From positions 13,516,001 through 13,580,000 of the forward strand of contig NC_088813.1 of NCBI RefSeq assembly GCF_011386835.1: a DNA stretch of 64,000 nt. The letters are read 5' to 3'. A model generated the notes under the pieces. That model had not been told where the DNA came from. It saw only the letters and a program-made list of their open reading frames with translations, and searched no databases. The stretch comes from Chrysemys picta bellii. Its lineage: Eukaryota. Made by a program: the position numbers and the translations under genes. Shown piece after piece: positions 35,572 to 36,246 of this stretch (positions are counted from its first letter, which is position 1; every line of letters begins with the position of its first letter).

Positions 35572-36246
35572 ATGGATTCCGATGTGGCCTCCCCCTCCAG
35601 CAGAGCCTCGACCCCGGAGCTGGAGGAAGCGGGCAGCCCCGAGCTCCTGTTCGAAGCCTTCTGCCGCGAGCCGGCGGCTCCCCAGCCGGGGCCCGGGGCC
35701 GGGGGGAAGCTGCGGGGCAGCCGGACGGGGCAGTCGGACGACCCGCAGCAGGAGCAGCGGCTGAAGGTGAACAGCCGCGAGCGCCGGCGGATGCACGACC
35801 TGAACCAGGCGCTGGACGGCCTGCGGGAAGTGATGCCCTACGCGCAGGGGCCGGCGGTGCGCAAGCTCTCCAAGCTCGCCACCTTGCTGCTGGCCCGCAA
35901 CTACATCCTCACGCTGAGCGGCTCCCTGCAGGAGATGAGGCGGCTGCTGAGCGAGCTCCACGCAGCGCCCCGCAGCCACCCGCTTGCCCAGGTCCGCCCC
36001 ATGCCCCCCGCCGCCGGGGCGCAGAGCCTGCCCCCCTCGCCCTCCGCCTGCTCCGTGGCGGCCGCGGCTGGGTACCTGGGCTTCCGAGCGGCTCCGCAAG
36101 AGACTCACCGCACGGCAGCGGGGCCCCTGGGCCCCTTTTACAGACACTACTCCGGCTTGCCCTGCCTCTGCTCCTTATGCCAGGCCGGGCCCCAGGAGCT
36201 GCCAAGAACGGCAGCCGCCCCGTCCTGCCTCCGGGCCAGCAAGTGA
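35572..36246 (+). CDS. OLIG4: Intronless Olig-family bHLH transcription factor, probable olig4 orthologue (224 aa)
   Basis: [17 protein letters not shown]-terminus. b[54 protein letters not shown]-terminal [10 protein letters not shown] motif as in Olig2/3. Family assignment is secure; the olig4 label rests on recalled residues (KVNS, LNQA, AQGP) and a location unlike OLIG1/2/3. Confidence 0.85.

Follow-up and report, generated by a model that had tools for sequence, protein, structure and literature searches.

The window, the whole 64,000-nucleotide stretch of Chrysemys picta bellii DNA that was analysed, contains an intact single-exon gene for an Olig-class bHLH protein, and we consider it likely that turtles have retained olig4 at its ancestral site by BSDC1, where it is transcribed and kept coding by selection. 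Sequence comparison supports the turtle gene as an orthologue of olig4, the fourth gnathostome Olig-class bHLH gene, mislabelled in databases. The olig4 assignment is new, as is the first indication of expression and selection; the gene models in NCBI and UniProt were known, and so was the kind of gene. The gene consists of the following parts:

35572..36246, + strand: olig4 coding sequence, a single exon of 224 aa plus stop, recognised by its homologues, an omega of 0.32 and in-frame indels.
35755..35916, + strand: bHLH domain (residues 62-115), Pfam PF00010 with E 7.8e-15, containing the olig4 signature residues RLKVN and LNQA.
35405..35410, + strand: TATA box TATAAA of the olig4 promoter, recognised by sequence; RNA-like contigs from 2 independent studies start 43-52 nt downstream, at 35453 and 35457.
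36631..36636, + strand: polyadenylation signal AATAAA, recognised by sequence; three of four contigs end 6-22 nt downstream (36642, 36645 and 36658), and that of run X5 ends earlier, at 36585.

The ORF list and its translation gave 224 codons on the + strand, running from an ATG at 35572 to a TGA at 36244-36246 with no internal stop, and Pfam gave one HLH domain in the protein. An earlier note on this stretch had described an intact, intronless ORF of 224 aa with an Olig bHLH, Olig-type motifs at the N- and C-terminus, its own TATA box, an ATG-free leader and a polyA signal, and all of these features were found. Inspection of the leader sequence showed that ATG is absent from TATAAA to the start codon. 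In the alignment, the window protein carries MDSD..SSRASSPE at the N-terminus and YRHY.GLPC.C..CQ at the C-terminus. Its basic region and loop (NSRER.RMH.LN) match Olig2, Olig3 and Olig4 column by column, and outside the bHLH the motifs MDSD..SSRAS.PE and GLPC.C..CQ align with the same three proteins.

The length of the ORF alone is not remarkable at this location. The coding sequence has a G + C content of 73% (GC3 0.91) and is overlapped by five further ORFs of at least 110 aa, on both strands, as would also be expected if the frame were open by chance within a GC-rich CpG island that contains no gene. That the gene is real follows from homology (E 1e-127 to 1e-40) and conservation of the frame, not from ORF length. 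The Pfam HLH match, full-length homologues with E-values down to 1e-127, purifying selection and transcript-shaped contigs refute a chance ORF, to which we attach practically no probability.

In a word-indexed protein search, the top matches to the window protein were turtle proteins, with the following identities:

Emys: 92%
Terrapene: 87%
Platysternon: 83%
Caretta: 81%
Gopherus: 77%
Chelydra: 66%
Emydura: 61%

The retention in turtles that the earlier note proposed is general, since intact ORFs were found in eight species of both suborders. Annotation of the gene does exist for turtles, in the form of NCBI and UniProt models that bear the names OLIG3-like, OLIG2-like or "BHLH domain-containing protein". 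The Platysternon orthologue (P0003) is misnamed "CAP-Gly domain-containing linker protein 2". For Chelydra, the NCBI model could not be translated from a contiguous span; a pseudogene was considered and rejected, the genomic ORF being intact (223 aa). That model (202 aa; L006:3001-3672) has in-frame pieces spliced out of the intact 223-codon single-exon ORF. A sturgeon gene model (P0073) fuses the HLH domain of olig4 with the BSD domain of bsdc1.

The turtle proteins were followed by those of salamander, caecilian, lungfish, bowfin and teleosts, many of them named olig4, with 42-51% identity over the full length; the best non-turtle matches, from salamander, caecilian, lungfish and ray-finned "olig4", were 44-51% identical, also at full length. 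The best 120 matches included none from a bird, crocodilian, squamate or mammal. An exhaustive search of cluster representatives found only 17 clusters reaching E 1e-30. OLIG3 is strongly conserved by comparison, with 206 mostly bird sequences in one 90%-identity cluster and 123 mammal sequences in another. No turtle OLIG3 was seen among the members listed (15 from each of the two large OLIG3 clusters).

A tree of 54 rows was built with IQ-TREE (LG+C20 PMSF). Its anchor sequences, whose names were obtained from cluster look-up and a further search, were OLIG3 of a snake, a penguin, mammals, frogs, lungfish, bowfin and sharks, OLIG2 of mammals and cod, and one chondrichthyan Olig1. The window protein and eight turtle-like sequences formed a clade with 100/100 support, nested in a 99/97 clade with the named olig4 proteins of Amia, Erpetoichthys, Anguilla, Hippocampus and Astyanax. 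This olig4 clade also included genes of frog, salamander, caecilian and lungfish, and two shark "olig3-like" proteins joined it at 98/95. Within the vertebrate clade, Olig3 and Olig2 belonged to the half that does not contain olig4 (92/84); olig4 lies outside a weakly supported group (92/84) of Olig1/2/3 and cyclostome sequences. This tree speaks neither for nor against the inference in the earlier note that olig4 is the genome-duplication paralogue of Olig3 in particular. When turtles and Olig3 were forced into one clade, the likelihood dropped (delta lnL 65) and the grouping was rejected by the AU test (p 0.0008). The protein thus groups with olig4 and away from Olig1, Olig2 and Olig3.

Several characters are common only to the turtle gene and olig4; they were defined from the present alignment and not from a published definition. 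These are an N-terminal F.AFC motif (LFEAFC), RLKVN in place of the RLKIN of Olig2/3, LNQA in place of LNLA in Olig3 and LNIA in Olig2, C-terminal YRH[FY] where Olig3 has FQHW, and a terminus in ..SK where Olig3 ends in KDLLK. Fish and Xenopus olig4 also share with the turtle gene the MDSD..SSRASSPE motif, the complete C-terminal YRH[FY]..GLPC.C..CQ and a single coding exon (checked in Amia and Hippocampus). They differ from it in overall identity, which is only 42-51%, and in three turtle-stem changes in the loop and helix 2 (GPSV to GPAV, ILML to ILTL and SLEEMK to SLQEMR). The turtle protein is also shorter, it is Pro/Ala-rich after the bHLH, and its host is an amniote. In early zebrafish papers, olig4 was reportedly named olig3.

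OLIG3, the bHLH factor of the amniote dorsal neural tube (human 6q23), resembles the turtle gene in its Olig-class bHLH, N-terminal SSRASSP and C-terminal GLPCPC..CQ. However, it forms a separate clade, lies at a different locus and shows far stronger conservation (over 100 sequences of birds or mammals per 90%-identity cluster); in sequence it differs by a His-rich N-terminal stretch and by RLKIN, LNLA, FQHW and the KDLLK end. OLIG1 and OLIG2, a tandem pair on another chromosome with functions in the specification of motor neurons and oligodendrocytes, are of the same family with the same kind of bHLH, but fall in a different clade. The nearest outgroup bHLH family, BHLHE22/BHLHE23 (Beta3 group, here as unnamed representatives), has a similar loop (PSVRKLSKIATLLLAKNYI), but differs in the basic region (N.NARERRRM) and helix 2, and falls with the outgroup.

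The database names OLIG3-like and OLIG2-like, together with the intronless state of the gene, could point to OLIG3 or OLIG2 having been duplicated or retrocopied in the turtle lineage, with the copy coming to lie beside BSDC1 by chance. The intronless state is uninformative, because Olig genes as a class generally have single-exon coding regions and all olig4 coding sequences checked (turtles, Amia and Hippocampus) consist of a single exon. The tree and the AU test reject a grouping with Olig3, and a turtle-specific insertion is excluded by bowfin, frog and seahorse, whose olig4 likewise adjoins a BSD-domain gene. The tree, the AU test and the synteny with fish and frog thus refute a retrocopy, and we hold such an origin to be very improbable. 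An olig4 retained at its ancestral site is the reading that we follow below.

The following neighbours were identified in the window:

15657..16688, - strand: large exon of ZBTB8B with the BTB domain, the upstream neighbour; a 343-aa ORF, Pfam BTB E 2.2e-26.
45466..57763, + strand: BSDC1, the downstream neighbour; about 11 collinear blastn blocks against the falcon BSD-domain gene.
61177..61863, - strand: protein-kinase ORF (TSSK-like); Pfam Pkinase E 3e-57, aligning with the kinase beside falcon BSDC1.

The ZBTB8B exon is 94-97% identical to the named ZBTB8B of Pelodiscus, Crocodylus and many birds, and the first two BSDC1 blocks also align with exons 1-2 of the Xenopus BSD gene. ORF identity and exon alignments thus establish the position of olig4 between ZBTB8B (- strand) and BSDC1 (+ strand), as had been proposed. 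The kinase ORF is probably TSSK3, by its position. A CpG island with 67% G + C (window 18001-20000), upstream of the BTB exon, contains several long ORFs without a Pfam match and is presumably the promoter and first exon of ZBTB8B.

The order of olig4 followed by a BSD-domain gene on the same strand was found in bowfin, Xenopus and seahorse and in two other turtles. The neighbour was identified by its Pfam BSD match alone in all loci other than the window. The distances from the olig4 stop to this gene, which is on the same strand in each case, were:

Xenopus laevis: 1.9 kb
Hippocampus: 4.7 kb
Amia: 5.3 kb
Emydura: 7.3 kb
Window (BSDC1): 9.2 kb
Emys: 9.3 kb

The synteny thus concerns the BSDC1 side. 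On the other side, the ZBTB8B exon gave no tblastn match in the Amia, Xenopus and Hippocampus loci, of which short upstream flanks of 10 kb were searched.

The locus of Falco biarmicus (L014:9495-11143) is a gap-free sequence in which exon 1 of BSDC1 and the BTB exon of ZBTB8B are arranged head to head, separated by a spacer of approximately 430 bp with 81% G + C. The turtle protein found no match in this locus by tblastn (best E 0.43). Nothing in the falcon corresponds to the 29 kb between turtle ZBTB8B and BSDC1, in which olig4 and the CpG island at 18-20 kb lie; both olig4 and the entire interval are gone in this bird. For mammals, a loss is suggested only by the absence of mammal proteins from the olig4-like matches.

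The sequence around the gene contains two further elements. A block of approximately 1.1 kb (38376-39481), 2.1 kb downstream of olig4, is collinear with the Logan contig L001 described below (67%) and with Emydura (82.5%), and has no match in the bowfin, frog and seahorse loci; it is a candidate regulatory element at the sauropsid level. Interspersed repeats flank olig4 on both sides (window 34379-34969 and 37531-38318). These repeat families are probably abundantly transcribed, because they draw hundreds of contigs, at 90-95% identity and with very high summed depth, in RNA-like runs.

The olig4 stretch itself was contained in 18 runs from five studies; 14 of the 18 are small contig sets (39-134 million letters) and were guessed to be RNA. 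It was absent from six other RNA-labelled runs (five of the same species and one of another), which had been included for their species label only. One run from each of four studies, covering two closely related species, was aligned to window 33000-38900. The contigs covering olig4 and the unit that they define were:

Run X1: 35457-36645
Run X8: 35453-36642
Run X5: 35532-36585
Run X7: 35298-36658
35453..36645, + strand: unspliced transcription unit of approximately 1.2 kb, with one contig per run; the 5' end is approximate and the true start is probably at about 35435-35453.

The contigs of X1 and X8 are those that begin 43-52 nt past the TATA box. Depth was zero in the unique flanks, at 34970-35363 in three of the four runs and at 36743-37530 in all four; the exception is run X7, which also has upstream contigs (35126-35316 and 33114-33738). 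None of the aligned runs showed an indel in the coding sequence. Three synonymous and five non-synonymous single-base changes separate the second species from the window, two runs taken together. With the TATA box and the poly(A) signal as its limits in four studies, this footprint fits an unspliced, polyadenylated mRNA of approximately 1.2 kb; it is not proof of one, as the libraries were guessed to be RNA, strand and depth cannot be read from contigs and a gene that lacks introns has no splice junction.

Selection was analysed on nine coding sequences (window, Emys, Terrapene, Platysternon, Gopherus, Caretta, Chelydra, Emydura and the Logan contig L001). All nine are open, with lengths of 179 to 233 codons, and among them 26 distinct gap intervals were counted and no frameshift. 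Under neutrality this would be extremely unlikely, a judgement that is softened by triplet-biased slippage in the Pro/Ala/Gly-rich stretches. Codon models (maximum likelihood, GY+F3X4, on the ML tree) gave the following estimates, the omega of the 70-codon bHLH partition being read from a likelihood grid over fixed omega values:

Whole coding sequence: omega 0.32; 2 delta lnL against omega = 1 is 81.
bHLH block, residues 59-128: omega approximately 0.2; 2 delta lnL against omega = 1 is 31.5.
Remainder of the coding sequence: omega approximately 0.4; 2 delta lnL against omega = 1 is 38.8.

Neutral evolution (omega = 1) was thus rejected. None of the three outcomes that the earlier note had named as refuting its interpretation was obtained: the protein groups with olig4, the locus of fish and frog is syntenic on the BSDC1 side, and omega is significantly below 1, with transcript-shaped contigs present. 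Pairwise NG86 values of omega were higher (0.37-0.80); a GC3 of approximately 0.9 inflates them over the ML estimate. The stem substitutions GPAVRKL, ILTL and SLQEM are common to all nine sequences and have been kept in every lineage, which argues for continuing constraint.

The divergence of the gene is nevertheless considerable. Between the window and Emydura, dN is approximately 0.20, about equal to the divergence of the flanking non-coding sequence (80-88% identity). The GC-rich region of approximately 3 kb around olig4 (34566-37544) is 68.6% identical to Emydura, versus 80-88% for the AT-richer intergenic flanks; olig4 lies in a locally fast-evolving, indel-prone island. Some residues that are invariant in all other Olig proteins aligned have changed: MPY to MPG in Emydura and to MPC in Platysternon, ARNY to ARSY in Gopherus and Emydura, and both RMHDL to RMHHL and RLK to RRK in Terrapene.

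These observations could also be read as those of a true olig4 orthologue that is being lost, still transcribed and open, strongly relaxed, and with little or no developmental function left since OLIG3 covers the amniote role. An omega of 0.2 even in the bHLH and 0.4 elsewhere, the lineage-specific changes at otherwise invariant bHLH residues, the low identity of the 3 kb region and the complete loss of the gene in the falcon all agree with such erosion, as does a protein identity among turtles of only 61-92%, versus 94-97% for the ZBTB8B exon to crocodile and birds. However, the frame is intact in nine of nine sequences, over more than 200 My and approximately 26 indel intervals, and omega = 1 is rejected for both partitions. 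The stem substitutions are conserved in every lineage, and the N- and C-terminal motifs and the DNA-contacting ERxR residues have been kept. Moreover, root-to-tip protein change in the tree is approximately 0.4-0.7 for turtles versus 0.4-0.6 for the olig4 of amphibians and lungfish, which are functional genes; within the Olig family, olig4 is simply the gene that evolves fast. We therefore regard ongoing loss as unlikely and prefer a gene maintained by selection, even if the constraint on turtle olig4, judged from these comparisons, is weak for a developmental bHLH factor.

The ninth sequence was found in run SRR18112698 (L001:787-1326), as an intact olig4-like ORF of 179 aa, without the F.AFC motif and a stretch of 24 codons after the bHLH. 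In the protein tree it grouped with turtles (100/100) and fell outside the eight named species, as sister to all eight, at 86/69. Its flanks align to the window in patches, the most prominent being 38376-39481 (67%); Emydura aligns nearly continuously, with 82.5% in that block. The divergence of the L001 flanks from the window is approximately twice that of Emydura, a side-necked turtle. The contig may derive from a fast-evolving turtle, for example a softshell, or from another sauropsid that has kept olig4.

The maintained gene would work as follows. Turtle olig4 has been retained immediately upstream of BSDC1, its ancestral position, and its own TATA promoter would drive an unspliced, polyadenylated mRNA of approximately 1.2 kb. 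Selection keeps the gene coding across turtles, with a frame that is always preserved and an omega of approximately 0.3. Other Olig factors bind E-box DNA as dimers. Turtle Olig4 has retained the ERxR core of the basic region as well as two intact helices, and is therefore expected to bind E-box DNA as a bHLH dimer.

To our knowledge, olig4 has been studied only in zebrafish and Xenopus. In the olig4 literature searched (the 2007 Xenopus olig-family paper was outside its scope), no function or expression of amniote olig4 is described; reptiles are not mentioned, and amniotes are mentioned in other contexts only. Zebrafish olig4 marks the lateral neural plate, is limited by BMP and cross-represses prdm1a, and dorsal interneurons depend on it, at a cost to neural crest and Rohon-Beard cells (PMC4620005, PMC3478512). 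Its role has been equated with that of Olig3 in the mouse (PMC4620005). By analogy with zebrafish and Xenopus, turtle olig4 most likely acts in early neural patterning, in the lateral neural plate and the progenitors of dorsal interneurons.

A different role is conceivable if olig4 survives in several sauropsid lineages, the SRR18112698 copy perhaps representing a second one. After the burst of changes in helix 2 and the loop, the gene may have acquired a function distinct from that in the anamniote neural plate, now covered by OLIG3, for example through altered dimer partners or a new, possibly post-embryonic, expression domain. We think this improbable, and return to an olig4 that is retained by BSDC1 and most likely acts in early neural patterning.

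An expressed and maintained olig4 in turtles shows that the gene survived past the origin of amniotes; its loss came later and independently, with certainty in the lineage of the falcon. The turtle offers an amniote in which to ask how olig3 and olig4 share the patterning of the dorsal neural tube. The orthology assignment also corrects a systematic mis-naming (OLIG3-like, OLIG2-like, CAP-Gly linker protein 2) that hides olig4 from comparative studies.
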